Positions 3,233 to 64,000 of a stretch of 64,000 nucleotides of DNA are shown here, piece by piece. Source of the stretch: Takakia lepidozioides (Eukaryota; Plantae; Bryophyta); NCBI GenBank assembly GCA_030704615.1, contig CM060733.1:29202001-29266000 (forward strand), written 5' to 3'. The position numbers and the translations under genes were made by a program. Under the pieces are notes generated by a model, which was given only the letters and a program-made list of their open reading frames with translations, searched no databases and was not told the DNA's origin. How positions within the stretch are numbered: position 1 is the first letter of the stretch; every line of letters begins with the position of its first letter.

Positions 3233-6702
<3,470 letters not shown>

Positions 6703-7734
6703 CTGCACAATTGCCAAATCTGACAATGAGCTCAATTCAAGGTATGCACCAATAGCACAGAATGCTTGACTCCCATTCAAACACAGCCTAGTGACTAGGG
6801 CACTTTGGCCGCCTATAGTTGGTCCTGGGTTCAAATTTAATGCCTGGGGAACTTGGGCTGCCTAACGCTACAGGGTTCTTTCTTCTTTCCCACGTAAAAC
6901 AGTTTTTGTGCAGGAGATATTGCCACGTTTCAAGAGTGAAGGGCCAGATTTCCATCAACTCGCCATACTCCCTTGGAACGATCCCTGTAGGAATCATCCC
7001 GGGTCGACGGTCAGCCGTGTCTCCCCGGTGGAAATTGGCGGGTAGGTCAAACCCGACCCCCGTCTCGGCCTCGCCCCTGCTTCTATGTATAAGGTGGAAT
7101 CATCCCGTCAGGGATTCCACACTGCACAGTATGTTTCGAAAGCATATTGCACGTGTCCGTAGCTCGTGCATGAGCCAATGCATGGCCGTCCCAGTGAAGG
7201 CCAGGGACCACGCAAACGGATCTTTGGTACGTGTGCATGTTTGTCTTCTCACCGGTTTTTTCCAGTCACACTTGTTAATGCATCATAGCCCCTCCGTGCA
7301 GTGCAGGCCCCGCAACTAATAACTTAGCAAGTGATTCGGCCGGGTAAGTCATAAAATTATGCACTTATTATGTCACCTTATAAATTGTTAGTTTCTAGTA
7401 GTATGTTCAAGATTCTTTCATCACTCATAGCCTTGAAGTCGAACAGGTTCTTGGCACCAATTGGGAGCAAGGAATGAAACGCGGCCCTTAACTTACATGT
7501 GTGAGGATCTGAGACACATATGGATGGTCCCATCCATACATGATATGTGCATGGGAGGAGTGTTGTGCAAGCGAGCCAGATGCCGTTGGTCGACGAGTCT
7601 TGTCGTAATTGTACCTGTTTGGGGATTTGAGCCCAGTAGTAGAATGAACTACCTTCTTGTATTTTGAGTGGACGTTTCTCCTGTTTTTTTTCCACTTTCA
7701 AAAACAGAAAGAGATTGCACTGGTGGTTTTTTTC

Positions 7735-7908
7735 AACCGCCTGCCAAGGCGCCCTACCGGTTGAGCCACATAGAGTTGGTCGAGCTGAAGACTCAGCTCA
7801 AGGATCTAATGTCAAAGGGGGATATCCGGCCGAGTAAGTCACCTTACGGAGCCCCGGTGCTATTTGCAGACAAGAAGGATGGGACGCTGCGGATGTGTGT
7901 CGATTACT
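7735..7908 (+). mobile_element. Ty3/gypsy reverse transcriptase N-terminal fragment
   Basis: [10 protein letters not shown]...[42 protein letters not shown] is the canonical gypsy RT start. Confidence 0.9.
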
Positions 7909-9123
7909 ATTACTGGAAAAATGTAGTTTGACCAATGTCATTTTACAGATTTTTTATTTCTCTTGACAGAATGACCTCCACATTCACAAACCGCGGAGGG
8001 GGGCAAAATGGAAATTCCACTACATTAAGAATCTACTGTTGTTCAAAGTTCACTGTTGTCAAATTCGGAGAACGGCTGCACTCTCCTCCTCTCCCATCTG
8101 CAAACAGCTAACTTAACCCAGCCCAAGCCTTCCCCCCCTCGGTCATCAAGTCAGACAACATTTTGAACAATACATGCTTGATACTGGGGAGGGAAAGAGC
8201 ATCTTCATTTTCATAGTTGCCAGAGATTAGCAGCACATAGGCTTGCCCGGGGACTGTCCCATTCCTACTCACCAATCCCTGCGCCACCTTCCAGTTAGCA
8301 TACTTCCAACTTCATGCACCCGCCTCCATACCCTGTCCCATAGAGCACAGGAGAGAATTTATAACACAAGTCAAAACAAAAATGATGAAAACTCGGAGGG
8401 TGAATGAGCTTCCATCCCCTGTTAAAAAAGAAAAGAAAAGAAAAGACGAGCAAGGTCGTTTGAGGGCCAGACCGGAGTGGCTTGCGCAGGAAGTAAAGCG
8501 ACGGCGGGGCCCAGCGAGCGTCGCCCGCGCAGTCATGGGAACGCGAGAAGGGATTTGTACGTTTTCCTCTGGGAATGTGCGGGGAAGACGGAGGCGGTAC
8601 TATTTATATGCACGGGATCCTTTTGGATTACACCCTCCGTTCTCTGGTCTTGAAGTTCTGTGTTGGCAATCAACTGTGCGGGAGTTTGGTGCAAGGCAGG
8701 CGCACGGAATTCAGAGAGATCCAAGGAGAGACGGAGAGACGGCTTTTGAGTGAAATTTTTGAGAGTCTGAGACGGAATCCTGAGACTCTATCGCCAGCAC
8801 AGAGGGGGTTGGGATACATTTGATTCTCAGATTTAACATCAATTTGGGGGTTTTGCATTCATTCAACTACAGCGCAATAGCATTATTTCTTCTCCCCTAC
8901 TTTCATTCTCATTGTGCTGGAAGAAGTTGGTGTGAGCTAAGGATAAATAGCGATTCTGAGCTCAGGTCAATTTTGTTCGACCAGAGGGTGAGAGATATTC
9001 AAGGAGGTATACGTTCAATTAAGGAGGAAAACGAGATTTCCTGATAACAGTGGGCACAGACATAAAGAGGGAGAGAGAGGGCGCAGCACGGACAGTGCAG
9101 GAGAACTGCAACCGGAGCCCCCA

Positions 9124-20655
<11,532 letters not shown>

Positions 20656-21073
20656 AAAATTCCAGTCTTTCATCATTTTCATGTTAGTGCGGATCCTTCT
20701 TACAGGGTGACAATTGGAGATGGTTCTCAATCAGGACGAATGGCTATTCACAGATTCCCCCATCAGTTTTTGACTCGCCTCAAGTCCCTACCATGGGTTC
20801 GTTTGAACTTGTTGTCTTTGTGAAAACAAGTTCTGCTCTAACAGCAGAAGAGTCCGGCAAGTGCAGCCCCAGAAGTCCTTGCTGGTTATACTATGATGCC
20901 ATCCAGGTAGCAAGACTGATCATGAGTGGTAAACCGCAAATTCATGGAAGCAGTATAGATGTCTGCAATATCATTTGGGGCTTTCAACTTTTGGAGTGAA
21001 TGGCATGAAACTTTGCTTCATATGGTACAGTTTTCCATCTGCTTAACCTCCTATGGAATAATGTATGGGAGAA

Positions 21074-32943: not shown

Positions 32944-33518
32944 GCCTGCTGCAAACGATCATTCTTCTCTAGTGAAAAGACGGAATCTCTTCCTCATCAT
33001 ACCAGACGAGAGTCCTTTGACATGGCGTACTTCTCCTAATACAAAGGCTTCTTCCTGCAATACGCGTGCTTACAAAGCTGTAATATGCCAGAGCAGAAGC
33101 TCAACAACACCCCATAACCTACATCATGTGCGAAGCTTTCCCTACAAAAGTTAAAACGGGATGAAGGTACAGGAATAGAACATCTCAGAAACCCACACAC
33201 GAGACCCCAAGAAAGAAGGAGAAATGCGACGGGCGGAAGCCGTGGGGGATGTACGCATCTTGGCACCCACTGTATGTCTATGCGCATGGCTTCCTTTCTT
33301 CTCTACACAATCGAAGGCGTTGAGTGTCTCGAAATGGGCGGCGCAAAACAATGACAACCAAATGAAATTCGTGCGGCAGGGCCGTATGCAATTGGACCGT
33401 CAGCCTGGAAAGGGAATCGTGGGGCTAGAGAGTCGAGAGAGAAAGAGAGAGAGACACACACACCTTGAGAAGGGGGATGTGAAAAGCCGTGTAGAAAGTT
33501 GAAGTAGTGATCAAAATC
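32944..33518. promoter_or_regulatory. Probable bidirectional promoter / 5' UTRs between FBL10-like and MOCS3
   Basis: 575 bp between two divergent start codons, with a GA-rich tract at ~33425-33455. Confidence 0.55.
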
Positions 33519-34922
33519 ATGGAGGACTTAGCAGGAGAGGTACATGAGTTGCGCCTCGAGAATGCTCGTCTCCAAGAGCAAATTGTTCTTCTCTTGCGAG
33601 ATCAAAGCCCGATTGTGTCTGTGCAAGATTCGCAGTCTCATGTGCTGGAGGATGGAAGCGCCCAACAACGGCCGGAGCAGAATGGTCTTCTGACGGGACG
33701 CGAGGTTGCCTGGGTTGCAGGGGGAGGCCATAGTCTGACCGAGCGGCACATCCAGCGATACAGTCGCCAGCTTCTCCTACCCTCCTTCGGAATTGAAGGG
33801 CAATCAAGGCTTGACAAATCTTCAGTGCTTGTTGTCGGCGCTGGAGGTCTTGGGTCGCCGATCCTGCTCTATCTTGCCGCGGGTGGTATTGGATGCCTGG
33901 GTGTGATGGACCATGATGTAGTCGAGCTTCACAATCTGCACCGGCAGGTGATTCACACAGAAGCAGGTATCGGGGAATCGAAGGTCAAGTCGGCTGCGTC
34001 AGCGTGCCGCGCAATCAACTCATCTCTTCAGGTGCGAGAATACCCTTTTGGTTTGAAGGCAGCCAATGCCTTGGAGATCATCTCAGGGTATGACGTTGTT
34101 GTGGATGCAACTGACAATGTGGGCACGCGCTACCTCATCAGCGATGCTTGTGTGGTATTAGGCAAGCCGCTAGTGTCTGGAGCAGCCCTGGGAATGGAGG
34201 GGCAGGTGACAGTTTACAATCACTCGCAGGGACCATGCTATCGCTGCTTGTTCCCGTTGCCACCCCCTCAGACAGCATGCCAGAGCTGTTCAGATGGCGG
34301 TGTTCTCGGCGTTGTGCCGGGTATCATAGGATGTTTGCAGGCATTGGAAGCCATCAAGCTTGTTACGGGAGTAGGCGAGCCGCTCACAGCTCGAATGCTC
34401 ATCTTCGACGCCTTTCCAACCCGCGTTCACACAGTCAAGTTGAGGGGGAGGAATCCAAATTGTGTGGCATGTGGGGACAATCCACAGATCAATAGAACCA
34501 CGCTGCCCACCTTTGATTACGAGGCCTTCACGTCGTCACCCCTCTCAGATGCTGCTCCCCAAAGGCAGCAACTGGTGAGGAAGGAACATTCAGTGACATG
34601 CAAGGAGTACCAGGCGCTTGCCAAGATGGAGGGAGGAGTCCATGTGTTGTTAGATGTCCGAGAACAGCATCAATACGCCATAGCCGCACTTTCTAATTCC
34701 CTCAACATCCCCTTATCCCTCTTGCCACATCAATTGGACAGGGTCCATAGTGCAAACGTGGGGAGAGAGGATCTGCCAGTGTATGTTATATGCCGGAGGG
34801 GCAACGATTCACAGAAAGCCGTGCAATTGCTTCGGGATGCTGGATTTGCATCAGCGTATGATGTTACTGGGGGCCTGCAGTCCTGGGTCATGGATGTAGA
34901 CCCCAATTTTCCAGCGGTCTGA
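33519..34922 (+). CDS. MOCS3: Adenylyltransferase and sulfurtransferase MOCS3/UBA4 (CNX5), single exon
   Basis: RYSRQLLL, GAGGLG, NLHRQ, CYRC...C..C, and C-terminal rhodanese with CRRGNDS. ATG at 33519 (the ORF track starts at an upstream GTG). Confidence 0.95.
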   Translation: MEDLAGEVHELRLENARLQEQIVLLLRDQSPIVSVQDSQSHVLEDGSAQQRPEQNGLLTGREVAWVAGGGHSLTERHIQRYSRQLLLPSFGIEGQSRLDKSSVLVVGAGGLGSPILLYLAAGGIGCLGVMDHDVVELHNLHRQVIHTEAGIGESKVKSAASACRAINSSLQVREYPFGLKAANALEIISGYDVVVDATDNVGTRYLISDACVVLGKPLVSGAALGMEGQVTVYNHSQGPCYRCLFPLPPPQTACQSCSDGGVLGVVPGIIGCLQALEAIKLVTGVGEPLTARMLIFDAFPTRVHTVKLRGRNPNCVACGDNPQINRTTLPTFDYEAFTSSPLSDAAPQRQQLVRKEHSVTCKEYQALAKMEGGVHVLLDVREQHQYAIAALSNSLNIPLSLLPHQLDRVHSANVGREDLPVYVICRRGNDSQKAVQLLRDAGFASAYDVTGGLQSWVMDVDPNFPAV

Positions 34923-35015: not shown

Positions 35016-35975
35016 CATCTGCAATATGGGTTGATAACTCCAACCAGGCTAAGTCTCTAGAATTTATTCGAGTGGGGGTGCTTAAGGAGTGCATGTCAGC
35101 ATGCTCCCAAACAGCCAGTGTGGCTGTTCAGGGTGAGTTTGGCATCCCTTCTTTAAGCTCCCGACGAGATGAATTCAAGGTCAGATGGTGGGGTCAGCTG
35201 CAACATATGTCCAACATCAGATATTCTACGTTAATCGACTCTATATCTTGGAAACAGGATCGCCCTGTCAAACAGGCTAAGTCCCGGTGGAAGAGAGTAG
35301 AAGAGATTCTCCAGGATCTTAATCCGCAAGTCTTGACCCTGCTGGATAATTCTGACTGAGAGGCTGTAGTGTCCAAAGCCATGTCTGTTGCCAGGAAATT
35401 GTCTGACAAAAATGAAGTTAGGCAGAAAACTTCCCTGAACTTGTTTCCAGTCTGTGACATGGGGGAGGACATCATGGATGACCTCAAGGGTCTACCCACT
35501 CTCGGCACTAGACTGAAATTTAAACTCAGGGCGGGAAGCCTACCTTTGAACAGCAAACAGAAGCAGAGAGGAAAGGGAGAGTGCAATTGCCCTTTGTGTG
35601 GGCAACCTGAAGACAATATTCATTTTCTGATTCATTGTCCGGGGTTCTCTCACCAGAGAGACACCCTCCTCAAATCTATCAAGGGAATTGTGCCTGTACC
35701 TCTGTTTACCAACTTTGAAAGTCTTGAGGCTGAGCCAAAAGCCCAGGCCCTTTTGAGGCCTAGTTATTGGGCAAACCACACACAGCAGATTGATGCTTGT
35801 GTGAAGGGATTTCTGAGGATATCTGGAAAACACAGATCCATTGTTTATTCCAAGGTAAGTCTTACTACCAGGTCAGCCTCTGACAAAGGTAGGTTGTGTC
35901 CCTGTGTTCCGCTCAAACTGGGCGCGGAGTCAATGGCCACAAGGCTACGGCAAACTATGTCTTATGATACATTCT
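35016..35975 (+). mobile_element. LINE family A, 5'-truncated copy just 3' of MOCS3
   Basis: Same ORF remnant and tail as 21163-22132, with CNCPLCGQPEDNIHFLIHC. TSD ttctatacagg at 35005-35015 and 35972-35982. Confidence 0.9.
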
Positions 35976-36557
35976 ATACAGGTACACCTTCAATAGTGCA
36001 TGAATAGTGCCGTTGTTGCTTTGTTTTGAAATACTCTTATTCTTGTTTCCAGCAAACAATATTGCAATAACAGAAGTTTTCAATATTTTTTTGCATTGGT
36101 CACTGCTGAGAACTCAGAGTGTCTGGTTTGGGTTCGGCCGGTCCACCACATTGTAAGCATGACATCTCCTTACGAGACTATGTACCTGGAGGCTTGAAGG
36201 AGTGGGTTGGTTACCTTGTTAAGTTTTAAAGTGCCACCTTGAATGCTTCAAAAGGTCTAGGACATTAGGCAAGGTCTGACTGGGATCCACCAGTCCTGTG
36301 ATATCAAGCTTTGGCATTGAAATAATGACAATGCAAGCTGAATTAAACCCACTGCTTGCTTTAATCATCAATGGTTGTAATCTTGCAGAGGAAGAGGCTG
36401 ATGGTCACTGGCTTTTTGAGTGGACAAGAGCTGGTGGTGAGGCAGCAGGGAGTGGATGCCATGCAAGTATCCTTACACCAGTGCAAATAGCATTTTTCCA
36501 TGAACTTTGCAGTCTCCCGTCTTATAACAGGCCTAACGCAAGTGCTTGATTGCTTAT

Positions 36558-37737: not shown

Positions 37738-37774
37738 CTAAAATGAACAGGTAGCCCATGCAGCCAGGAAGCAC

Positions 37775-38188
37775 TATACAACAGGGAGGAACTGCAATTC
37801 ACATACCTTGTGGAAAGGGGGATTAGAGACAGATTTACAACATGTGTGGTTGTGAGTTTTCATCACGGAGGTGCCACCAGTTGCTGAGGAGAGTGCCGGT
37901 ATGAGCACCAGCGATACTAGTGGGTATACAAGACGAGGTGCGCGGTTTAGGCCACCTTCACCTTCAGTGTCTTCTGAGGAAGGTTCAGACTTAGAATTAG
38001 GAGGATTCTCGCCGAGGGTGCAAGCCATTTCCGTGCCATTGTTGTGGGATACGATGGAGGAAATGTATGGAGCTACCAAGGGGCCACGTTGGTACTCTGG
38101 AGCTGTAGGCACCATCGAGCTTGATAATTTCATACAGGAGTTTGATAGTTGGTGTGATTTGCAGCAGATGCGCAATCCACAACTGTTC
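37775..38188 (+). mobile_element. Gag-like N-terminal fragment of a probable LTR retrotransposon
   Basis: ...GPRWYSGAVGTIELDNFIQEFDSWCDLQQMRNPQLF, homologous to 55640-56335 (-). Ends abruptly at CACTA sequence. Confidence 0.55.
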
Positions 38189-42441: not shown

Positions 42442-43021
42442 CCTCCTCAACGACGTACTCACCCTTGCACCAATTTTGAATTAAATCGAATTTAAATGAA
42501 TTTAAAATATATATTTGCATTTAGAAATATATATGATTGCGGTTTTGAGGGGCGTATGATTTTATTTTTAGCTCTATTTTGTTTTGTGACATTGGGCTTT
42601 GCACCACTACATCCTTGCAAAAAATGGGACAAAAAAAAAATGGAAAAAAAATAAGTGTGTTTCTAGGGTCACTTTTGCAAAACTCTCTATAAAGAGTGCA
42701 TGAAGTTGAAGATAACTCAATTTTGGAGTGCAAATGAGAGAACAAAATCTGGTTATGGGTCCAAATGACTTTTGTTTACTCCCAAATTTTGCACGCACAT
42801 TGCATATGCTATCATTAAGCATATGGCTTAAAAATGGAATAAAAAAAAAATCATCTGCAGACGAAACACAATTTTCCGTCTCTATGACATGTAGCTGTGT
42901 TCAACACTAGAATGACCCATTGAATCAACTTGGTTCAAGCTCATATTTGGTCCACATGTGCATAAGTATGTTTAGATCACATATGCAAAGTTGCAACCCA
43001 CACGAGCAACAAGAAAAAAAT

Positions 43022-43732
43022 TTACATCAATCGGTTAATCGGATGTATATACAAAGTACATAATGAGAATATCTGCAATGCCCCTCTACGCGATCCCTGT
43101 CTCAAAGGAACCCTATTTCTATCATACACATCCCACTCACGCTGTAATCGGAGGTCCCAATCATCCCGGGAGAACTCGTATGATGCAAATAGTTCGCTGC
43201 CAGCCCTAATAGTCCTACTAGCACATGTCATCACAAACATGTGCATCCCCTCACAGTATACTGACGTATGACCACAAAAGCTCTCATGCCCATCGCTTCG
43301 CTCGTCCCATACTACATTGGTTTTCCTAGGATGACCAAAAGAACTATTGACTAGCCCAACAACATTGCCGAAGATGTCGGGGTCACCATCACAAAATCTG
43401 ATTTCAATGAGAGACAACCCCTGTCTACGTACATCCTGTCCGTTGACACACAAAATGTAGGGTAGGATGTATGGGACTTCGAGACGTAATGTACGGAACT
43501 CCGTGGAGGTGTAGTATGGACCGTAGTATGGAAACAAGTCCACCATGTTGTTTCTCCGAGGAGGAACCACAATATCATTGACCGTGAATAAACCCCGACC
43601 CATAGCAGGGTTTGTAGCGGCTCTCACAACATACCGTCTTCCCCAATACTCGAACTCCACATTTTCTCGGATGGGGGTGGGAGGGTCGAGATGATTCCCC
43701 CAACAACGAGGCTGGACGATCCTCAGTAACAT
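43022..43732 (-). CDS. SET-domain protein (putative lysine methyltransferase) encoded within the CACTA element
   Basis: Uninterrupted 236-aa ORF with SET motifs in order: GRGLF, PYYG, DGDP..GN..GLVNSS, TNV.W, ASRTIRAGSELFASY. NSS replaces the canonical NHS. No post-SET Cys cluster. Confidence 0.72.
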   Translation of the reverse strand: MLLRIVQPRCWGNHLDPPTPIRENVEFEYWGRRYVVRAATNPAMGRGLFTVNDIVVPPRRNNMVDLFPYYGPYYTSTEFRTLRLEVPYILPYILCVNGQDVRRQGLSLIEIRFCDGDPDIFGNVVGLVNSSFGHPRKTNVVWDERSDGHESFCGHTSVYCEGMHMFVMTCASRTIRAGSELFASYEFSRDDWDLRLQREWDVYDRNRVPLRQGSRRGALQIFSLCTLYIHPINRLM

Positions 43733-43769
43733 AGTCCTATGCGCTTCCCATCGGGGGCGAGGATCCGGC

Positions 43770-44747
43770 TCAGGCCGCCCGAAGCCGACCCCTCATAGGG
43801 GTTCGGGGGGCACATGCACGTGGAGGTGGAGGTGGAGGTGGAGGTGGAGGGGGAGGGGGAGGTGGTGGTGCTGGCGGAGGAGATGAAAGTGGAGGTGGTT
43901 GAGGATGTAATGTCGGAGGTGCAGCCGGGGGTACAACGTCCGGATTAGGTACAACCGGAGGTGGATCAGGCAAGGCCACAATCAGGGGGACCGCCTGAGG
44001 AAACTGGAGGGGGGGGGTGGGCCTGCTCGTCGCCGGCCATAACGCCTACGACACCTATGATACCCCTCGACCCTACGCATCTCATCTACGTGCTGCTGGG
44101 GGAACCAACTGGTCACATCGGGCACATGCTCTGGCACAAATTCTGCAAGTAGACCGGCGCGAAATGCCTCATGTGCAATGTGATTGCGAGCTTGGGCATC
44201 AAGGCGTGGCTGCAATGTGCGTAGTGAACGACGCATCAATACTTATGTCGTAATTTTGATTCATGTATGCTTATCAATCATACTATATTATTAGATAAAC
44301 CTAAATGTACCTTAAATGAATGTTAATGAGATGGGTGGGAAAAACAATCACCTTTGCCGCATCCGCAATCTTGTTCTTCTTGTAATGTTTTTCGACAATA
44401 TGCGGTTGCCGCCTCGGTGGTCTGGTGCCGCCCGGCGGTATCCGTTCCCAACACTTAGTGCACCAACACTCAATCCTATCGGGGGGGTCAAAGGTGGACG
44501 TGGTTGGACGGGGTGGCCCGCGAGGGGGCAACCTGCGGCGCACCTGACTCGATCCCGGAGTGTCAACATCCTCTACATCACCTGAAATTTGGCCCCGGTC
44601 CCTTCTACGATTGTGCCCGGCAGCCTGTATTGGATCAGGTGCAATGGGTGCCTCCTCGCCACGAAAAATGGTCGCTCTAGGGCCACAATCGATATGTGGT
44701 ACTACCTCCCCATCCTCAAGGGAGACGGGTTGATGTTTCCTCACCAT
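43770..44747 (-). mobile_element. Upstream coding pieces of the CACTA element: CxCxxC...H Zn motif, linker and polyproline tract
   Basis: RIECWCTKC...VEKHYKKN resembles the N-terminal transposase-associated motif. The polyproline run (43820-43870) is one indel away from the SET frame. Confidence 0.5.
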
Positions 44748-45169
44748 CCCATCCTAATTAACACACACCACCAACACTTTCATTTCTCAAAAACCGTTGG
44801 CAAAAAAACCCTATGCCTCAGCCTCGGGGCTTTCAAAATTGGTAACCAAGGGCGGAGCATCCCTATGGTGCTAGAGCCCAAGACAATAAATCCTTCCTCT
44901 CGCTCTATCTTCAGGATGCTCACACTATGGAAAAATTTGTTGAGACCCAGTGCTTTGCGATTATCAGATTGAACCACATTTTGGGTATGTGAATCCTAAT
45001 TACACCGTTTATCCTTTTAACCCCAAGACCCACAACCAAAATCGCCAATCCAAAACCCAGCACCATAAAGAAAAGCAAACACCCTAACCCAGTACCATAT
45101 GAAAAAATAAATAAAATAAAATAAAAACTAAGAAACCCAAAAGGCCCTAAACCCTGAATACAGAAAGGC

Positions 45170-45420
45170 CGGCTGTCGCCGCCTGCAACACCCTGGCGTT
45201 GCATTGGACGGTGAGTTTTTTTTTAAAAAAAATTGGAGGTCGCACCCCGCGACAGACAGCCGTCGCGGGGGGCGACATGTTTTTATTTATTTATGGGGCC
45301 AGGGGTCGCAAGAAACGACGGCCAGCCGTCGCAATCTTCATTTTTACATTTCAAAAAAGGGCGGGCGCAGGCGTGCGACGGCCAGGCGCCGCACGTGGGC
45401 GCGCCTTTTTTTTTTCCCTA
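45170..45420. repeat. CACTA-type subterminal repeat region (gtcgc/gcgac motifs)
   Basis: Dense direct and inverted gtcgc motifs, similar to 55195-55620. Confidence 0.6.
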
Positions 45421-45837
45421 AGTGCTTCAAGCATCTTTTTCCCCTCCCGTTTTCGTTTGTTCTTTGGGAGAGAGGTAGTTCAGAGAGTGGGGTTTAGGGT
45501 GGAGGAGAAACGCACCTGCTGCTGAGCCCGAGGTGGTCGCAAGGCCCCAAAGAGTTTGCTCCAACGCCGCTCCAACGCCCAAGGTAAGCACTGCCTCCTC
45601 CTTCACTTTCTGTTTTTCTTTCTTGCCCTAAGCACGGGCTGATGTCTCTCTCCCCTGTGTGGTAGGAATGTCGCGCAGAGGCGCGACCTAACGAGCTGAA
45701 GAGAGAGAGCCGTGGTGAGCGGGGGAGAGACGTCCTGCAGCGGCGGGGACCCGCGCCGCTGGCAGCCGCGACAGCACCGCAGCAGCTCGCCGCGCCAGCT
45801 CGCTTCAAGCACCAGCACCAGCAGAGGTACGTCAGGG

Positions 45838-47205
45838 AAATTACACTCTCCCTTTCCTGTTTACTGTTCAAAGGTAGTCTTCCTGCCCTGACTTTAAATT
45901 TAGGTCTGGTGCCAAGAGTGGGATAGACCCTTGAGCGCATCCATGATGTCCTCCCCCATGTCACAGACTGGAAACAGGTTCAGGGAAGTTTTCTTCCTAA
46001 CTTCATTTTCATTGGACAATTTTCTGGTAACAGACATGGCTTTGGACACTACACTCTCTAAGTCAGGTTTATCCAGCAAGGTCAAGACTTGCGGGTCCAG
46101 ATTCAGATCCTTGAGAATCTCTTTTACTCAATTCTCCCAGGGCTCACCCTGTTTGACAAGGCGGTCCTGTTTCCAAGATATAGAGTCAATTAACTTAGGA
46201 TATCTGGTGTTGGACATATGTTACAGCTGAACCCACCATCTGACCTTGAATTTAGGGTGTTGGGAGCTTAAAAGAGAGCATCATAGAAGAGAGGGAGAGA
46301 GAGGGAGAGGGAGAGAGGGCGTGAGAGGGAGACATCAGGGGGCAACAAAGAAAAGAAAAGAAGGTGGGGGGGGGGAGTGACTAAGCAGCTGCTGCTGCTC
46401 AGTCACTCCCCCCCCCCCCACATTCTCTGTTTTTCTTGGTTGCCCCCTCTCTTGGGGAAACAAAAGGGACAGATCCTACCTCTGTCAGGGGCTGATGTTG
46501 GTAGTAAGACTTACCTTCACATATAGAATTAATCTGGGTTTTCCAGATATCCTCTAGAAATCCCTTCACACAAGCATCAATCTGCTGTGTGTGAGATGCC
46601 CAAAAACTAGGCCTCAGAAGGGGCTGGGCTTTTGGCTCAGCCTCGACTTTTTCAAAGTTAGTAAACAGAGGTACATGCACAATTCCCTTGATAGATTTGA
46701 AGAGAGTGTCTCTTTGGTGAGAGAACCCCGGACAGTGTATCAGAAAATGAGTATTGTCTTCAGATTGCCCACACAACGGGCGATTGCACTCTCTTTTTCC
46801 TCTGTGCTTCTGCTTGTTGTTCAAAGGTAGGCTTCCTACCCTGAGTTTAAATTTCAGTCAGTGCCGAGAGTGGGTAGACCCTCGAGGTCATCCAAGATGT
46901 CCTCCCCCCATGTCACTGACTGGAAACAAGTTCAGGGAAGTTTTTTGCCTAACTTCATTTTCATCAGACAATCTCATGGCAACAGACATGGTTGGACACT
47001 ACAACCTCTAAGTCAGATTTATCCTGCAGGGTGAAGACTTGCGGTTCCAGGTCCAGGTCCTTGAGAATCTCTTCTACTATCTTCTGCCAGGACTTAGCCT
47101 GTTTGACAGGTCGGTGGGCGGTCATGTTTCCAAGATATAGAGTCGATTAACTTAGGATATCTGGTGTTGGACATATGCTGCAGCTGACCCCACCATCTGA
47201 CCTCC
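45838..47205 (-). mobile_element. Two LINE family A fragments (45838-46270 and 46462-47205) separated by a G-rich foldback
   Basis: Reverse-strand matches to 35150-35900. Confidence 0.85.
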
Positions 47206-47959
47206 CCCCACCCAACCCATTTTTTTTCATTGTTGCCCCCTCTCTCTCCCTCTCTCCCTCTCCCTCTATAACTTTTTGGATTTCATTTGGCCCTGATATT
47301 TACTATTTGCTTCTTTCATCTAAACTGGATGAAATACATGAATAATGGTGACCTATTCTAAAAATCCAAGAGGTAGTAATTTGTACCATCATTAATGATG
47401 GCAGTTACTAAACCTAAGCCTATACCGTAACCCTAAGATACCTTTTTATGGGATATCATCCATTAACAAAGTGCATCTCTTTAAAATATGATTTTTCATC
47501 CACCCTGGATGAAAAATCGGGAAGTTGTGCCCTAAACGGGCCAACATATTTCACAGCACAGAACTCGTGCTTCTATGATCCTTGATGATGCGCCGTGTAA
47601 ACCTGCTCCCTTGCGGCTACATGGTACTCGTGATGGCTGGCTTTTGGGATGCGCAATGGCAGATAGACAGATTCTTCTCTGGCAGTCGACAATGCAGTGA
47701 TCGCTCTGCTCAGAAATTTATGATTCTGTTAAATTCGCAGCGGCGCTCTTACTCCTCGTTGGGAAATACTCCACCCCTACTTAGCCACAGATTACATGTT
47801 GCTCTCTTTCTGTATGAGCTGCTCTCTATCTACTTTGATTGCGTTCTGCTGGAGACATCTACTGGACGCCATGGCGTAGGGCATACCACAAACACTCAAG
47901 GTTTTTTTGAGTGTACCCTTGCTTGGATTACGATTTGTACATGCTTTAGAATTCAACTC

Positions 47960-49410
47960 TGACATGGATAGCAACTGTGAAAACCTGCCACTCACCTGAT
48001 GCATCCTCACTAACACACATCTCTATGTGGTGATTTTTGGGACGGGCACAGGTGAGGGTCTTCACTTGTCTTGAATTATTGAAGCTTGCAGAGTCTGATT
48101 CATGCATAAGGGATTGCTGCTACCGCCTGAAGCTGCTGATACCAACTGTTGTTTCAAATCTGCCATCTTGCTGCCTCAAATCGGCTTCAAGTCTGCTCTA
48201 ATGAGGATCACCTTCTTACTCCTTATCCCTGTTTTTGGTTCTTGATAACCACTTCTATACGTTTTGGAGTTAAGACACACAAGGGACTTCATAGAAAACA
48301 AAATCTCTGTTGAAAGCTCTGGCTGTTTTTAACAAAGGTACATGGCTGCGGCTATAGCTCTGGCAACATGGAAACTAAGCTCTGAAATGAAACACCATGG
48401 CCTGGCTCTGATGGATCAGAAGATAGACCTTGTGATAACAAACATTCTTCAAGGCTCTTATATCACCACTATTTCATTGCATGATAGGGGACAATGGTTT
48501 CTGAGTTCATTTCTTTAACTAGCAGAGCTTGTTATGAGGCCCTGGAATACCACTCCAGGCCCATATCTACTTGAGGGTACTCAGCCCTATGTTTTGTTTT
48601 GTTAGAAATCTGGCTTATGACTTGGCACTGAAGCACCTTCAGACCTGACCCCATCAGTATTTTGGTTTTCAAGAACTGCTTGCTGGTAGATGCTGTGCGC
48701 TTCCTACCTTATACTATGGCAGAGTTTTGATCTTGAAGTCCTGGAATGACTATCCAGGCTTACATATACTTGAAAAAAACTTAGCCCCGCTTCTACTGTA
48801 TGAATCTTGCATGTGTCTTGGCACTGACAGATCAGTTTCACGCCTACACAGGATGTTGTTTTAGGAAGATGAATGGCTCAAGAACTAGATTATGTAAGGC
48901 TTGACCCGTGTCAACAACAAAAAATGAATGCTTTATGTCAACTTATGGGGCTTTCAGGATATGAATGACCAGGAATCCCGCCCTCCCACCCTGTTTTTTC
49001 AGATACCCTGAAAAGTTATAAGATGTTCAAATGAGTTGGTAAAAGGGGTTGTTAGATGATGCCCTGTAAAGGGTTGCTTTGTCTTTCAATGACAATGACC
49101 TTAGTGGTCTTGTCCATGTCTTGACATGACATGTATATCTTCTCTCCCTCTCTCTTATTAACATTTTCTACCCCCTCTTTCCCTCTGTGGTTTTTTTTTT
49201 TTCTGTGAGCAGCATGAAAGAGAGGAGAGGGACAGAGAGGGACAGAGAGAGGGAGTGAGAGGGAGAGATCAGGAAACAAAAAGAAAAAGAGGAAGGTGGA
49301 GGGGGGGAGTGACTAAGTAGCAACTACTCAGTTACTCCCCCCCCCCCCCCCCACCTTTTTGTTTTTTCTTTGTTGCCCCCTCTCTCCCTCTGTCTCCCTC
49401 TCTACTGGGA
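47960..49410 (+). mobile_element. Family C degenerate element ending in a GA-rich tract and G/C hairpin
   Basis: 48960-49410 is homologous to the reverse complement of 52760-53015 joined to 53760-53950. Confidence 0.5.
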
Positions 49411-49981
49411 ATTGGCAGTTTGCTATCAGTGTGGATTTTTTGTTCCTCTATCAGGCTTTCTCATCCATACCGGATGAGCCACCAGGATAGACACTGAATT
49501 ACCTCTAGGACGGTTCTTTTGGCCTTTTCATTCCTCCTCTATTGACTCTCATCCATACCGGATGAGTCACCATGGAAGAAAAGAATTACCTCTATGGAGG
49601 TTGCCAACAACATCATGTTTTTCCATCCGCACCGGATGAAAAACTACCAGGGTGATAATTTTTCATTCCTCTTTTATTGACTCTTGTTATCCATACCGGA
49701 TGGTCTGGAAAGGAATGATAGATTACCTAGATGGAGGTAAGGCGCTGCCACGGATGATATTCCCTACTTTTTCATCCTGACACATGTGAGCTGTCTATGG
49801 GTGATGTGATTATGACCTGGAATTGATCTTTACTACCCCTAATTATGATTAGTTACGGTGGAAACCCTAACCCCTACCCCAAAACCTATTTTTTACCTTG
49901 CTACGGATGAAATCCGTCAGGGTTTATGGAATCGTCCTACCATTTTTCATCCGCGGATGAAAAATCGGGGGACAACCCTAT
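49410..49981. repeat. Element with arrayed CATCC-N-GGATG palindromes (a second partial copy at 47280-47535)
   Basis: catccataccggatg at 49462 and 49550, variants at 49624, 49689, 49948, 47317 and 47497. Shared end ggatgaaaaatcggg...cccta. Confidence 0.6.
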
Positions 49982-52671: not shown

Positions 52672-53031
52672 AAGTTGGCCTCATTAGGAACATTCCAGAT
52701 CAAAAACAAAAAAAACCAAGCATGTCGGGGGCTGAGAGCAGCAAGTGCTCGGGGTCTCGAGAGGGGGCAACAAAGAGAAAAGAAAAAGGTGGGGGGGGGG
52801 GGAGTGACTGAGCACCACCAACAGCTGCTGAGCACCACGGGCTCAATCACTCCACCCCCCTCTTTTTTTTTTTTTTTTTTTTTTCTGGTTTCCTGATCTC
52901 TCCCTCTCTCTGTCCCAGCTCTCTGTCCCTCTCTCCCTCTCCCTCTCCCTCTCTCTCCCCCTCCCTCTTTTTTTTGCTGTTCACAAAAGTAAACAAACCA
53001 CAAGGGAGAGAGGGTGCAGAAAAAGTTAAAA

Positions 53032-53743
53032 GATTGTACTCATAAGACGTTGTTTGCCGTAGCCTTGTGGCCATTGACCCCGCGCCCAGTTTGAGTGGAA
53101 AAAAAAATGACATAACCTGCCTCTGTCAGGGGCTGACATTGGTAGTAAGACTTACCTTCATATATAGAATTAATCTGGGTTTTCCAGGTATCCTCTAGAA
53201 ATCCCTTCACACAAGCATCAAACTGTTGTGTGTGATTTGCCCAATAACTAGGCCTCAGGAGGGCCAGGGCTTTTGGCTCAGCCTTGAGACTTTCAAAGTT
53301 GGTAAACAGAGGTACAGGCACAATTCCCTTGATAGATTTGAAGAGAGCATCTCTTTGGTGAGAGAACCCCGGACAGTGTATCAAAAAATGAGTATTGTCT
53401 TCAGATTGCCCACACAATGGGCAATTGCACTCTCCCTTTCCTCTCTGCTTCTGTTTGCTGTTCAAAGGTAGGCTTCCTGCCCTGAGTTTAATTTCAGTCT
53501 AGTGCCGAGAGTGGGTAGACCCTTGAGGTCATCCAAGATGTCCTCCCCCATGTCACTGACTGGAAACAAGTTCAGGGAAGTTTTTTGCCTAACTTCATTT
53601 TCATCAAATCTCATGGCAACAGACATGGTTGGACACTACAGCCTCTAAGTCAGATTTATCAACCCATATTGCAGATCCGTACTCCAAGGCAGGTCTAATA
53701 ATGCGAGAAAGCATGGTTTTCTTAACCTCAGAGTTGACCCCTC
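53032..53743 (-). mobile_element. LINE family A copy inserted into the family C terminus
   Basis: TSD tgcagaaaaagttaaaa at 53015-53031 and 53744-53760. Zn-knuckle ORF at 53040-53465. Confidence 0.9.
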
Positions 53744-53759
53744 TGCAGAAAAAGTTAAA

Positions 53760-54650
53760 AAGAGAGAGGGAGAGGGAAGATATTCACGTCATGTCAAGAC
53801 ATGGACAAGACCCATAAGGGTCATTGTCAATTAAAGACATAAACAGACCTTGATAGGGCACTATCTCACATTTCCAGTCTTGTCAAATCATCCCAAAAAG
53901 ACACCACCCAATTATCCAAGACAAAACAGGGTGGGAGGGCGGGGTTTGTTCTTGTGTGGGACAAGATAAGATATTGTTGTCCCTGGGCATGCTGCAAGGC
54001 CTCTTGGTTCAGCCTGTACATATACCAGCAGCATACCAATTCAGCCATGAATTATGGCATGTCATGCATCAGCCAAGGCAAAAGGACTAGCTTGCATTTT
54101 GTCAGAATCTCAGTATCCCACCAAGCAGTCCAACTTGATCCAGATGAAGTAGATTCCATATCATTTGTATTCACCCCGAGATATGTGATCATACAAGGTA
54201 TCAAGGGAATGTGAATGCAGCCTGTCAGATTGCAGGTTCAAGATTTGTACCAACAAACAGCATGAACAGCCGAGATCCAGCCTCTTTTGTATAAAAAACA
54301 GATGGCAGGTCATAGGCCTGATGTCATGACAGATCCAAAACAGTAGGTAGGATTCCATTGCAGCTTACCATCCTCATCCTTTAGGAGTTCCATGCTAAAG
54401 ACATGCAAAAAACACCTTACTACGATCCACTACACATCAGAAATGGGCCTGACAAGGAGCAGGGCAGTACCCTACCAGGCTGCCGCCTAAAACTTCAAGG
54501 CCATCAGATCCATAGTTACCCAAAACCGCCAAAAACATACCACCAAAAACCAGATCCTCTTTGGCCAAACTAACTTACAACCTAGCCAAGTAATCCACAG
54601 GCTGTGCTGTCAAAGATTAAAAGGTAGGGTATTTGTGGCATGTGTAGCAA
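53760..54650 (-). mobile_element. Family C degenerate element (possibly L1-like 3' region)
   Basis: Homologous to 48.9-49.2 kb. Reverse-strand traces NGILPT...VHAVCW resemble the L1 zf-RVT region. Confidence 0.4.
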
Positions 54651-55149: not shown

Positions 55150-55638
55150 ATTCACCCCCAAAATGAACCCCAAACCCCCCCCCCCCCCCCACCAGGCTGC
55201 CGTCGCGACTGCAGCATGTTGCCAATGGCGACGTGTTTTTTGGGCGGGGGTCGCAAGCAGCGACGGTCGGGCGTCGCAAACCCCACCCGGCTGACTCCCA
55301 GGCAGGTAAGAAAAAATAAATAAATGCGACGCCGCGCCGGCGCCCTCACCAACGTCGTCGGCTGGAGGGCCGCAACGGGGAGATGTTGCTCAAAGAGGCT
55401 CCTTCCATCGGCGCGGACGGCCTGAAAAACCGACTTCCGGTAGTCACGGGAGTTGGGCCGGGGGCTCGCGACCCCCATACGTCGCATTTTTGTGACGTCA
55501 TTTTGGCGACATCCTTGCGACTGCAGGGCAACGGCCGGGCGTCGCAAAATTCTGCGCCTCCCGCGTGCCCGAAAAGGGCGTTTTCCCGACGCTGCGGCGT
55601 GGCGCGGGCGTCGCAAAGACCCCCCTTTTCTTGTAGTG
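55150..55638 (-). mobile_element. CACTA terminus: TIR CACTACAAGAAAAG plus subterminal repeats
   Basis: cttttcttgtagtg ends at 55638, preceded by many gtcgc/gcgac motifs. Confidence 0.85.
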
Positions 55639-58600
55639 AGGGTTGAAGGCAGACACGGGTACTGGTGCTGGTGCGGTAGTGGCTTGGGTGGATGTCGTAG
55701 CTACGGTACCACCAGTCCCACTAGTCCCACTGCTGCTTGCTGAAGCTGTCGGTGCAGCGGTAGGTGTAGCCAATGCCCTCGTGGCTCTAGTGCCCCCTAG
55801 TGATGGAGACATAGTCGGGTGACCAGTACATCCTCCACTCCTCGATCTCAACCTCATGCCCCCGCCTGAACTCATGGTAATCATCAAGGTACTGAAATAG
55901 CCCCTTCCATGCCATGAAAGGCGTAAATAGTTGTGGATTGCGCAATTGCTGCAAATCACACCAACTATCAAACTCTTGGATAAAATCATCCAGCTCGATG
56001 GTGCCCACCGTCCCAGAGTACCTTCGTGGCCCCTTGGTAGCCCCATACAGCTCCTCCATTGTGTCCCACAACAATGGCAATGAAACCACTTGCACCACCG
56101 GTGTGAGTCCTCTTGATTCACAATCCGAATCAGATCCTTCCGTAAAAGACACAGGAGGTGAAGGTGGCCTAAACCGCACACCTCGTCTCGTGTACCCACT
56201 AGTATCGCTAGTGCTTGAACCGGCACTGTCCCCAACAACTAGTGGCACCTCCGTGTTGACAAACTGTCACTCAACCGGTCATGAACATGTCCCTAATCCC
56301 CTCTCCTCAAGGTAACCGGGTAGAGAACCTGTTGCGGCTTAATGGTTTGGAATACTAGGTTCCTAACATAGCCTACACCTGCACCTGCATCCACCGCAAG
56401 CACTCCTATGGTTGGCTGGTCATCATTTCCAACCTCACCACAGGAAAAACAATGATGGTTTGACTAGTCATCACCCCAGCCTCACCATCGACAGCATGCT
56501 CTAGGATTGGCCGGTGATCAAATAACAAACCACCCTCCATGAGCTTCAAAATTTGGCCTTCAAGACCGCATGCTAGTCCTCAGGCAGTCCACCAGTGCCT
56601 CCACGAGTTAGCATAGGCCGTCCACATGTCAACACGGGCCACCATAGACCAGCATAGGCCCACACAGATCACTGGTCAAAGCCGTCACAACCCCAAACAG
56701 GCCACAGGTCACAGCCTATCACAACCCCTCACAGCCCATCACAGTCTGTCACAGATCACTGGTCACAGCCGTCACAACCCCACACAGGCCACAGGCCACA
56801 GGTCACAGCCCCTCACAGCCCCTCACAGCCCATCACAGTCTGTCACAGCCCCCTCATAGCCCCAAAGGCCACATGTCACAGCCTGTCACAGTCCGTCACA
56901 GCCCACAGGCCACAGGTCACAACCTGTCACAGCCCCTCACAGCCCCATAGGCCACAGATCACAACTCGTCACAGCCCCAAAGGCCACATCTCACAGCCTG
57001 TCACAGCCCCTCACAGCCCATCACAGCCTGTCACAGTCCGTCACAGTCCCACAGGCCACAGGTCATAGCCTATCACAGCCCGTCACAGCCCCAAAGGCCA
57101 CAGGCACAGCCTGTCACAACCCTACACACGTCACAGGGGTCGCAGCCCCAAAGGCCACAGCCTGTTACAGCCCCTCACAGCCCATCACAGCCCCATCCAT
57201 GGCCACTCATGGCAGTTTAGCCATTTCTCCAAGGGGTTTAGCCACGCCAAGCTAGGGTTTGTGTCTCTTGGACTCTAGGCTTCTTTGCACCGAGCTATGG
57301 TGGCTGTGAGGAAATCAGCAAGGTATTCTTACTCTTTATGGCCCCCACACACCACCAATAGTAACTCTAATTCCAAAAGAAGATGTTTGCAACCGAAACT
57401 AAGTGCACAAGCTTCCTTTTAACTCACAAAACAGCGCCATTGATCCCTATGGCGACTAACCAAACATGGCTGACTTCCAGCCCTTGTAGACACTCATTCA
57501 TGTGCTTTCCTTGACCATAGCATGCCCTTCGCATCTATCCAGCCCCTGCACCTGCTGCTTCAAGAGTTGTGCTCCCTTCAAGCTTGAAGTTGAAACCCCA
57601 ACTCACATATGCCCTACAAGTGCATTTATTTCACCCCAAGTGGAAACCAGCCCTAGCCCTTCCGTTCTAGCTCTCTAAAGCTTGAAAACAAGAGCCTCAA
57701 TGGGCTGAAGGCATACTCCACACATGCCCCACTCTCACCATAAGAGAATTAGCTCTTTTGCTTCATTTCTTGCACCCACAAACCTGAAAATACAAGCTTC
57801 AGCGGGCTGAAAGCATGCTCCACACATGCCCTATAGGGAAACCAGCCCCTTCCTTCCTTTCTTGCACTCCCAAACCTGAAAGTACAAGCCTTCAACAGGC
57901 TGAAAGCATGCTCCACACATGCATTGCCCTCACATAAGGGAAGTCAGCCCTTTCCTCTTCCTTGCTTGCCCTCCAAGCTTGAAGATGGAAACTTCAATGA
58001 GTTGAATACATGCTCCACACATGCAACCCCTTCACACAAGAGGTATCAGCCCCCTATCTTGGCTCCTTGGCTCCTTGATGCTCTCTAAGACAAGACTAAG
58101 CACTCCACAATCTTTGCCAAGCTCCTGAAACCCTAAGGCTTACATTTCCAGCCTCAAGACATGCCTCTTGTGGTGCAAGAGCTCTTCTTCCAAGCTCTGA
58201 AACCCTAGGTGCACATTCCATGGCCTTGCCGCACCTCTTAGCTCCTGTTCCAGCCTGCTCTTGCCATGAAGAGCCCTCTCAATGCTGAAGCTCGAGATTG
58301 AAACCCAATCTCAACATACTCCACAAAGTGAACTGATTTGCCCCAAGCCAAATCAGCCCTTTCGCTTGGTCTTGCAATCCTTCACACAATGAAAGCTTGC
58401 ATTCCCAAGTCCAGTTCTCAGCTTTGCACCAAAGCCTCTATAACCTGCTCTTGATTGGTCATCTTCCCAATCGTGCTTGCTCATGCATGTACACAATCTG
58501 AAACCATCAAGGTGCTCTGGAATTACCTGCAACATGGTGCTTTTATCTCTGAAGCTGAAGATCGAATGCCAAGGTCTACCACCTCATAACCCACATCGCC

Positions 58601-61899: not shown

Positions 61900-64000
61900 T
61901 CTTCTCCGCCAGGTGCCTCGTCAAGTCTTCGTCTCACTGGACGGGTGAGAACATCTCCTTCCAAGTGTTGGCCACTTTGAAGCAATGGCGTGTCCCGAAG
62001 GCCCTCTCGCAAGGCTTCCGCCCACTTGTGAGGATTCTTCGATCTGGAGGCAGTCCGCATCAGCATTTCCTGCCTGTCCGGCCCCAAGCCCCACTATTTC
62101 CCTTTCAAGAACTCGTCGTACCTGCATTGCTGCATAATTGACCTCACAATGTCCTCCGTTGTGACAGTGAGGATGTCCACCAGATGCGTCGCAGAGGAGG
62201 CATGCCAGGAAGAATGTACTGATTCGGCCATGTTTGTTGTCGGCATGTCGGTGTCGGAGTCGAGACATATTTCCTGCACATGCACATGTTCAGGTTACAA
62301 GCAAATTACAAATAATGAGTAGCTAGCATAATATTCAACGGGACGCAAATTCGTCCCACTCACCTCCCGCATATAATCGTCGAACTGGAGGAAATGATAA
62401 TGCCACCATGCTAGCCAACAGACCATTGCTCCCTCGTCTGATTTCTTTACAACACCTGACGTTGTCCACTAAGCCCGTATACATGCAAACTGTGTCTCTG
62501 CATCATCCAAGGTGGGAGCACGCTTCCACGCAAGACACATGGAACGGTGCTCCTCTTTGAAATCTGGCGCCACGAGCCTGGTTGTGTACTGCGACAAGCT
62601 CTGCAGAAAATGGAACCCACAAGATCTCTCCTTGATTTTCATCGGAACATTGGGGTCTTCCCCGTACACCCTTCGGATGACAGCCCAATTTGCTTGTGCG
62701 TTGTCCGCCATGAAACCATGGAAATTGGGAGGGGGAAATCATGCCCTGGCCATCTGTTCATTTATTCCCTGCCAAAGAAGCATATCCGATCGTGTGTCCT
62801 CTCCTTTCATCTCACAAATAACAATTGTCAATAGCATCCTGCAGTGGGTGTCGTAGACATGTGCACCCATTGTCACCCACTGGTGATTTGTAATTCGCTT
62901 GATATGGTCAAACATGACCCAACTGTTTGACAAGTCCCCACTCGTCACCCGGTGGACCAGTTTGACGCCGCTGCCATGCACACATGTTTACATTTTGAAT
63001 ACGAAACAGCGATCTGCCTCAGTCCCTTGTCCTGGAAATCTACTTCCATGAATGTAGTCATATCCACATCGTCGCTTCACCTCCAGAATGGAGTGCATAT
63101 CCAAGCCACGCCCAATTCTCTGTTTGCAGGAGACAATGTGGTTTCGGACATTCGGTGAACAGACGCGGAACACCGACTCCAGTAATGCCTCCATTTCCTT
63201 CTCATCGAAAGGAACTCTGTCGGAGCCGTCTTCCGACATAATTCTGGCCAATGTCATCTTATGGGCGGCCTGCAGCTGAATCTGTTTGGGTTTGGCACGA
63301 GGTCTCAACTTAACCTCCTCCTGAACGAGCTGCTCTGCCTCGTGGGCAGCCTCCCGCGAGTTACCCCTCGCCAATTTGTGACAATGGGAACCAACGTGTA
63401 TGCAAGCTGGTGTGAGGTCAGGGAAACGGTGCAACACATAGAACTGCTTGGCATTATAAACAGACATGCAATGTGGTGGTTCTTTGCAATGTGCACACTT
63501 AAATGTGGAGGTTGGAACCTTCTCCTGAGCTCGAAATGGTTGATGAGGTGTGTCTGTCCAATCCGTCTCGTTCCTGTGACCTCTGGATTTAAAGTGGAAG
63601 CAAATTGGGGAGAAACACCGCAACGTGCCCGCACAAACAACGTAGTGTACCTGCACACCATTGAGCATCTTCATGCTGGTGGTTTTGGTGACGCACCAAG
63701 GATGACCGTCATGTTTCCTATCCATATCTATCAACATTCCGGACGCCCTTGAATAGTCCGTTCGAGAAGGGAACTCAAAGAAGATATTACCGTCGACGTC
63801 TGCGGGAAGACATGTAACGGATTTAATTGTGAACTTGTTGTAGTCCAGGAATGCGGCCCCTGGCCTTTGCGCAATAACTGCCAACGGTATGCAGTCAGAA
63901 GGTATATGACCAGTGCAGATGCGCTGCACAAACCAATAATTGTGGCGTCTGACAAGAAGCGTGGGGGGGCGAGCGTGCAAACACCTTCCCCATGGACAGA
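61900..64000 (-). mobile_element. Mutator (MULE)-type transposase pseudogene with N-terminal GCM/WRKY-like Cys/His domain; runs off the window
   Basis: One frame broken by in-frame stops at 62990, 62741 and 62471: C..C...HVGSHCH; VMFDHIKR; FMADNAQANW; SCGFHF (CxxH); after an intron, TTNMAESVH (catalytic E motif). Confidence 0.75.

Follow-up and report, generated by a model that had tools for sequence, protein, structure and literature searches.

The window analysed here, a stretch of 64,000 nucleotides from Takakia lepidozioides, contains at 43732-43022 (-) an uninterrupted open reading frame (ORF) of 236 codons, lying upstream of and on the same strand as the remains of a CACTA transposase gene (TnpD). 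A first-pass annotation had read this ORF as a SET-domain gene belonging to the transposon. The question that the locus raises is whether a SET domain is indeed encoded, whether it is part of the element or of the host, and what a CACTA transposon could do with it. Our results indicate that the ORF is what a decayed copy has kept of a terminal exon in the transposase gene, namely its 3' part, and that the exon is very probably a conserved cargo of its CACTA lineage; that its product would favour the element by writing a histone mark is a possible role.

The SET domain and its predicted fold

The motifs of a SET domain occur in the ORF in the expected order, as the first-pass annotation had described, with GRGLF at 43600, PYYG at about 43528, GN..GLVNSS at about 43348 and GSELFASY ending at 43178. 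The core spans about 43675-43178 (-), and the residues of most interest are those of GxG (43600), Y69 (43528), Y92 (43459), N129 (43348) and Y185 (43180). Compared alone with the Pfam SET profile, the window ORF stays below threshold (E 0.16); a language-model search placed it adjoining SET clusters (score 0.95), and PF00856 was matched by 26 of the 30 aligned members of its family, with a best E of 6.5e-9, while no other Pfam family was matched across the same 30. The AF2 model of the ORF has a mean pLDDT of 77, exceeding 85 in most of the core and falling below 50 in the tail beyond residue 207. A structural search with this model rendered Z scores of 12.1 for Set1 (COMPASS), 11.7 for SET8 and 11.4 for SET7/9, the top rows of Foldseek were all SET enzymes, SET7/9 and SET8 first, and the best structure match in the Atlas was a streptophyte SET cluster (TM 0.65). 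The Foldseek ranks across SET families were nearly tied, and the fold matches single out no subfamily devoted to a particular histone mark. The profile and structure searches that had been suggested for the ORF thus found the fold, and with the family profile, the AF2 model and the fold searches in agreement we regard the SET fold predicted for the window ORF as established.

Active site and possible catalysis

Among the 30 aligned members, G45 and G47 are conserved in 29, Tyr or Phe at position 69 and E180 in all, and Y185 in 27; in a membership test for the SET superfamily the GxG, YxG and C-terminal ELxxxY motifs were all present. The best solved-structure match of the family profile was Legionella LegAS4 (E 7e-5), in which Y135, Y159, N181 and Y220 are among the six residues mutated in a catalytically dead allele (10.64898/2026.05.29.728679). 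By residue count on the profile alignment, these four correspond to Y69, Y92, N129 and Y185 of the window ORF, and the equivalent sites hold Tyr or Phe in 30, Tyr in 30, Asn in 24 and Tyr in 27 of the members, Phe having replaced Tyr at the Y69 position in nine of them and Gln having replaced Asn at N129 in five.

The first-pass annotation had noted NSS in place of NHS and the lack of pre- and post-SET Cys clusters, and both observations hold for the whole family. The His of the RxxNHS motif is absent throughout, the motif reading GY(I)NSS or QSS with Ser in 29 of 30 members, and the Arg that usually precedes the N motif is replaced by Gly. LegAS4 reads NFS, not NHS. NSS is a signature of the family and not a lesion. 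No pre-SET, AWS, CXC or post-SET Cys clusters were found in the family alignment, and of 27 members 25 end their SET frame 2-18 residues past the last Tyr; the cofactor pocket thus lacks its post-SET cap, and a partner may be needed. In 20 of the 27 an aromatic residue is located two places past the last Tyr. The net charge of the core spans -8 to +9 among the members, a variability that would give no pointer to one conserved histone-binding surface. The missing cap, the Gly in place of Arg and the variable charge speak against catalysis, but intact copies are probably active as SAM-dependent lysine methyltransferases.

Gene structure and splicing

The gene model was searched exon by exon. Upstream of the SET ORF, an ORF at 44747-44352 (-) bears a CWCTKC...H motif and constitutes exon 1, whose CxCxxC...H zinc motif belongs to the C-terminal half of the Transposase-associated domain, the domain that normally opens TnpD. 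The exon 1 of the window itself had no Pfam match; five of the six homologue exons tested matched PF13963 (Transposase-associated) weakly, with a best E of 6.5e-5, and CxCxxC...H or CxxC motifs are located 500-800 nt upstream of SET in loci L001-L006, L010, L011, L014 and L017. Past the zinc motif there is a GT donor in phase 0, both in the window and in L003, L004, L006, L010 and L011. In the window, two phase-0 acceptors are available to it. One, at 44209, enters the SET frame after an intron of 142 nt (intron A, 44351-44210 (-), GT..AG), and the exon thus opened begins with a basic (RRRYGRRR) and polyproline linker (44209-43733 (-)) and continues into the SET domain. The other, at 42053/42052, lies in frame with the exon 1 donor and opens TnpD exon 2 (42052-41446 (-)) after an intron of 2299 nt, within which the SET exon sits; the remaining TnpD exons, with Transposase_21, DUF4218 and DUF4216 and the motifs SDG, HDYP and HIEKN, occupy 41167-38188 (-). 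The domain is therefore not an intronless gene, as it had been described at first: the exon begins at 44209, is spliced to exon 1 and is longer than the 236-codon ORF, which is what survives of its 3' part.

The splice from exon 1 to SET is supported by contigs of two runs, X8 and X9, that are only guessed to be RNA and whose contigs derive from other copies. In an X9 contig 44384 and 44211 are linked through 30 other letters, which leaves 142 nt missing in net terms, and one piece of an X8 contig starts exactly at 44209, another contig covering 43065-43973. An X8 contig has changes at the codon of the invariant E180, so that the transcribed copy appears to be decayed itself. Among the joints of the RNA contigs shown there was none between exon 1 and TnpD, and a junction that skips the SET exon is what we infer from the splice sites. 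In L001, L005 and L014 the zinc motif and SET are in one continuous frame. A conserved splice donor after the SET domain was not found among the homologues, and this, together with the early end of the frame past the last Tyr, indicates that SET is the terminal exon and that a fusion of the SETMAR type is unlikely. We consider a layout with two isoforms of one gene, zinc motif-linker-SET and TnpD, to be quite likely.

Two further features were observed in the long intron. Strong GTGAGT donors at 43140 and at 42463-42382 (-), accompanied by a poly-T acceptor, lie downstream of SET and could delimit untranslated exons of the SET isoform. The region 42690-42830 is abundant in RNA-like contigs with unrelated flanks and is probably a small dispersed repeat.

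The element in the window, its ends and its decay

The copy in the window is a dead member of a high-copy CACTA family. The TnpD pieces at 42052-38190 match Transposase_21, DUF4218 and DUF4216 and carry four in-frame stops (near 40892, 40062, 39320 and 39268), which bears out the lesions that had been noted in these same-strand exons. In the SET exon, frameshifts are located between 44209 and 43732, one at a C-run near 44010, deduced from the reading frames, and another at a gap of about 26 nt near 43780, defined relative to the contigs of other copies; one contig shows 26 gaps over 43634-43806, and loose ends occur at 43780. The spliced SET product of this copy, read from its sequence, would be broken upstream of the domain, though the frame of the domain itself is open. 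Among the differences shown between the window and the majority of copies, six are non-synonymous and three synonymous, a pattern that would be compatible with neutral decay. In a DNA run, about 10,600 contigs were found over 5.9 kb, and the summed depth over SET was of the same order as that over TnpD; this fits a high-copy family in which most copies have SET, although such depth is not a copy number.

CGAC-rich, near-palindromic repeats are present upstream of exon 1 at 45167-45393, with five matches against 0.02 expected. Two of the five are at 55260 and 55528, adjoining a CACTA terminus, CACTACAAGAAAAGGGGG, at 55638, which together with its CGAC subterminal repeats occupies 55200-55638 (-), has the flank AGG and is inserted in a gag-like ORF. 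In a test for subterminal repeats, these were present at 55200-55620 in the window and at both ends of L003, a complete Riccia element described below. Following the layout of the Riccia loci, the end at 55638 is probably the upstream end of the SET-bearing element, and later insertions may have pushed it away from exon 1. The repeats at 45170-45420, which had been taken for subterminal repeats of the CACTA element, are real; as regards their position, however, they probably form an internal promoter cluster, since a CACTA end with the same repeat exists at 55638 and L003 also has an internal cluster. On the other side, the 3' end of TnpD abuts at 38187 a retrotransposon gag-like fragment (37800-38187 (+)), 81% identical and inverted relative to 55926-56314, so that the downstream end of the element has been lost. 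No pair of terminal inverted repeats (TIRs) with a target duplication was found in the window, in which 55638 is the one end recognized. Two other candidates for a terminus were rejected: CACTATAC at 37772 falls within the flanking gag-like sequence, and CACTTAGG at 45424 matches poorly. The decayed element is bordered by two gag-like fragments in inverted orientation, at 37800-38187 (+) and 55639-56314 (-), which are 81% alike; the CACTA terminus cuts the one on the right.

A probable first coding exon of a divergent accessory gene, in the position of TnpA, can be proposed at 45668-45826 (+), where it is cut off by a LINE-like repeat. Genes on the opposite strand are found upstream in L001, L002, L003, L005, L006 and L018. 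These had no informative Pfam match, and no similarity to them was found in the window between 45.4 and 55.7 kb. A decayed multi-exon gene running from 52671 to about 51000 (-), with no informative match in Pfam or the Atlas, may be the flipped remainder of the gene at 45668 (+). Copies of the LINE-like repeat, 84-94% alike and with a zinc-finger-like C-terminus, are located at 35150-36000, 45840-47260, 49200-49400 and 52700-54100, in the places at which the upstream portion of the CACTA element is disrupted, and a long hairpin involves three of the LINE-like copies (about 46337-46448, 49246-49403 and 52764-52900).

Several features elsewhere in the window can be added. At 33507-34922 (+) there is an intronless host gene of the MOCS3/UBA4 type (ThiF and rhodanese domains), with its best match in Sphagnum (68%). 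A cluster of palindromic CATCC..GGATG repeats at 47300-49960 possibly represents the ends of another DNA transposon. Many matching inverted stretches, between about 3200-6600 and 18250-20700 and between 14660-16840 and about 22540, suggest inverted copies of a large repeat. A degenerate tandem array with periods of 10, 20 and 41 nt occupies 56659-57194, and a Cys/His-rich ORF of 330 codons at 62988-63980 (-) looks transposase-like by eye and has no Pfam match.

Relatives and linkage to the transposase

A full HMMER scan rendered 64 relatives, 27 of them at E <=1e-10 and with about 30-45% identity. A word-index homology search found nothing with the ORF and, with the profile, only a Ginkgo protein. 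Named SET proteins among the relatives come from the liverwort Riccia sorocarpa (several), from the transcriptome of the fern Psilotum nudum and from the annotation of the gymnosperm Ginkgo; the Ginkgo (P0158, Gb_21150) and Psilotum (P0139) members are known from annotation or transcriptome sequence alone. The arrangement of SET within a CACTA element is confirmed in the genome of the window and in Riccia.

Evidence on the ownership of the domain comes from the loci with enough DNA around it, in all nine of which a same-strand TnpD exon 2 is located about 0.3-1.6 kb downstream of SET. These nine are independent (L001-L005, L006, L010, L011 and L018). A check suggested in the first-pass annotation was whether homologues always lie upstream of Transposase_21 within CACTA TIRs. 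The downstream TnpD was found throughout, and a full set of TIRs in L003, which is a complete Riccia element at 5980-16234 with CACTAC ends and a 3-bp ACC duplication, and which has an internal CGAC cluster at 9400-9900, directly upstream of exon 1. In the Riccia loci exon 1 is preceded, at a distance of 4-6.5 kb, by a CACTAC-type end, and a gene on the opposite strand occupies the interval. For L001, L002 and L005 a search for TIR pairs found none. In L003 a small ORF at 15182-15517 (-) with no Pfam match converges on the 3' end of TnpD.

The distances among SET domains and among TnpD proteins are correlated (Mantel Spearman rho 0.70, permutation p 2e-4), and the two trees (FastTree, 10 taxa, unrooted, leaving aside the redundant loci L007-9 and L012-13 and the short loci L014-17) have all 7 splits in common, several with modest supports (0.36-0.84). 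In the closest pairs, pS is 0.66-0.84, that is, saturated, against a pN of 0.19-0.35, similar to the values of TnpD; the dN/dS-type comparison that had been proposed thus points to purifying selection. No host homologue outside the family was found among the 64 matches, and homologues in the form of single-copy host genes unlinked to CACTA, the alternative raised in the first-pass annotation, are contradicted by the linkage to TnpD at nine of nine loci. Taken together, linkage, matching trees and a pN lower than pS show that SET and the transposase have been passed on together, with SET under purifying selection. They uphold the view that it is not a recent capture of a host gene, and we consider it almost certain that SET is a conserved cargo of this CACTA lineage.

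Possible functions of the SET protein

A mechanism can be proposed in which a single promoter, rich in copies of the repeat motif of the element, would yield two proteins from the transposase gene. Use of the near acceptor would produce a zinc motif-basic/proline linker-SET protein ending soon after SET, and use of the far acceptor would skip the SET exon and produce the TnpD transposase. The shared N-terminus might bring the SET enzyme to the element or to its transpososome, and the SET isoform would there methylate a histone lysine, favouring expression or mobility of the element, that is, acting against silencing. The whole of this mechanism, two isoforms plus targeted histone methylation to the benefit of the element, is a real possibility that falls a little short of being probable. 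More tentatively, the transposase gene of an old land-plant CACTA lineage could, through one splice isoform, encode a histone lysine methyltransferase that is active and targeted by sequence, and that places a protective mark on the copies of the lineage itself by way of the shared zinc exon. If true, this would be, to our knowledge, the first plant example of a histone writer that is encoded by a transposon and shown to counteract silencing, and the choice of splice site would be a switch between protecting and jumping.

Other roles have to be weighed against this one. An active methyltransferase might instead modify a non-histone substrate (the TnpD or accessory protein of the element, or a protein that serves silencing or repair in the host) and tune transposition post-translationally. 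SET7/9 has many non-histone substrates, and it stands with SET8 in the top Foldseek rows; the surface charge is not conserved, and the common N-terminus could drive binding to TnpD. However, the nearly tied Foldseek ranks take weight from the first of these arguments, LegAS4, the best profile match, is a histone H3K14 enzyme, and the basic linker upstream of the domain resembles the nucleosome-binding NLS of RomA (10.64898/2026.05.29.728679), so that we regard such a role as unlikely, while deserving attention. It can also be the case that the SET domain is catalytically dead and serves as a reader or decoy, binding a histone tail or competing with host PRC2 or SUVH and so shielding the element. 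This could explain the absent post-SET region, the family-wide replacement of the His and Arg of the RxxNH motif and the substitutions at Y69 and N129, but LegAS4 is active without the same His, and at 35-45% identity the members still share the GxG for SAM binding, the Asn and the tyrosines of the channel, which makes a dead domain rather improbable. Slightly less probable again is an active histone methyltransferase that writes repressive H3K27 or H3K9 methylation on its own element or insertion site as a form of self-limitation. Two competing splice acceptors would suit a feedback switch, and enzymes of the EZH2 type rank next after LegAS4 in the profile matches; those matches are weak, however (E 0.006 or worse, and restricted to the last motif), and the known chromatin cargos of transposons (VANC, TnpA, TET/JBP) have been described as anti-silencing.

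The two remaining alternatives concern the gene rather than its activity. A single SETMAR-like fusion of exon 1, SET and TnpD, made through a splice donor that closes the SET exon, would agree with the strong GTGAGT donor at 43140, past the last motif, and with the Riccia gene models P0122 (L002:10001-11795) and P0146, which join SET to TnpD exon 2. The donor at 43140 is nevertheless in phase 1, against phase 0 of the good TnpD acceptor, and the homologues stop directly past the domain with no conserved in-phase donor. Moreover, the Riccia models omit the final Tyr, to which, and to a stop, the genomic frame of L002 runs on; the joins in P0122 and P0146 are probably annotation artefacts, and the fusion is very improbable. 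That SET is a functionless fragment captured from the host and carried passively would agree with the decay of the window copy and its six non-synonymous against three synonymous differences, but is largely refuted by the co-divergence of SET with TnpD, by saturated synonymous sites accompanied by conserved motifs, and by the lack of any host homologue outside the family among the 64 matches; we give it hardly any credence. An element-borne SET isoform that favours its own element is the likeliest of these readings.

Comparison with known systems

The first-pass annotation knew of no SET domain as cargo of plant CACTA elements. For land-plant CACTAs this stands, no description having been found in the literature searched (most subscription papers and Repbase Reports being outside its scope); SET cargo elsewhere, including the EnSpm-lineage Plavaka, has on the other hand already been described. 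HarbingerS elements and the MuDR elements of Phytophthora have been reported to contain SET genes (Kojima and Jurka 2014, cited in PMC12730594). The same holds for Helitrons and for the Plavaka elements (EnSpm superfamily) of red algae, whose PAG2 is a fusion of an N6-adenine DNA methylase with SET (10.1101/2025.02.11.637652). As far as the available part of the source on HarbingerS and MuDR goes, these share with our family a transposon-borne SET methyltransferase gene; they belong to other superfamilies and hosts, and that part describes no shared-exon layout. Plavaka comes closer, being a DNA transposon of the EnSpm superfamily with a long-retained accessory SET, in which the activity of PAG2 is a prediction. 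PAG2 is, however, a separate gene and a methylase-SET fusion, within a three-gene cassette beside the Plavaka transposase, whereas in the land-plant element, compared by description, SET comes without a DNA methylase and lies inside intron 1 of a Transposase_21-type TnpD, with a common exon 1. When the Plavaka PAG cassette was looked for, the genes called in the homologue loci included no methylase, and the 30 members matched only PF00856.

The resemblance to LegAS4/RomA concerns the domain itself: neither has the NHS His or pre- and post-SET Cys clusters, and four active-site residues align. The identity is only about 22%, and LegAS4/RomA has an ankyrin domain and a C-terminal flank of SET that are absent from the CACTA family, so that the match should not be taken to show the origin or the substrate of the CACTA SET. 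SETMAR (Metnase) likewise has SET and a transposase coded at one locus, but that locus is a domesticated one of primates, in which a host SET gene is fused to a mariner transposase, whereas the family described here is a multi-copy transposon in which SET and transposase are most likely alternative products.

The production of transposase and accessory factor from one CACTA gene by alternative splicing is the classic layout of maize En/Spm (PMC13547354; 10.64898/2026.08.24.746577), and the alternatively spliced TnpA of Arabidopsis Spm3 induces CG hypomethylation at Spm3 elements (10.64898/2026.08.24.746577). The SET-bearing elements thus resemble En/Spm and Spm3 in deriving a transposase and a chromatin-related accessory protein from one alternatively spliced gene. 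They differ in that TnpA, the alternative product there, is a DNA-binding protein without an enzyme domain, and in having a further, opposite-strand gene upstream. The anti-silencing factors so far known from plant transposons, VANC and TnpA, have been described as DNA-binding regulators; an enzyme with a conserved SET domain in the same splice position would allow a direct biochemical approach to the ways in which elements change the chromatin they lie in. The SET protein, which is small and has a single domain, lends itself to assay, since its frame is open in Riccia and in contigs from metagenomes. In bryophyte, fern and Ginkgo annotations the family raises the apparent number of SET genes, its members being entered there as host genes. 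The combination of a stand-alone SET exon nested in intron 1 of the TnpD gene of a land-plant CACTA element and sharing its exon 1 has no counterpart in the papers searched.
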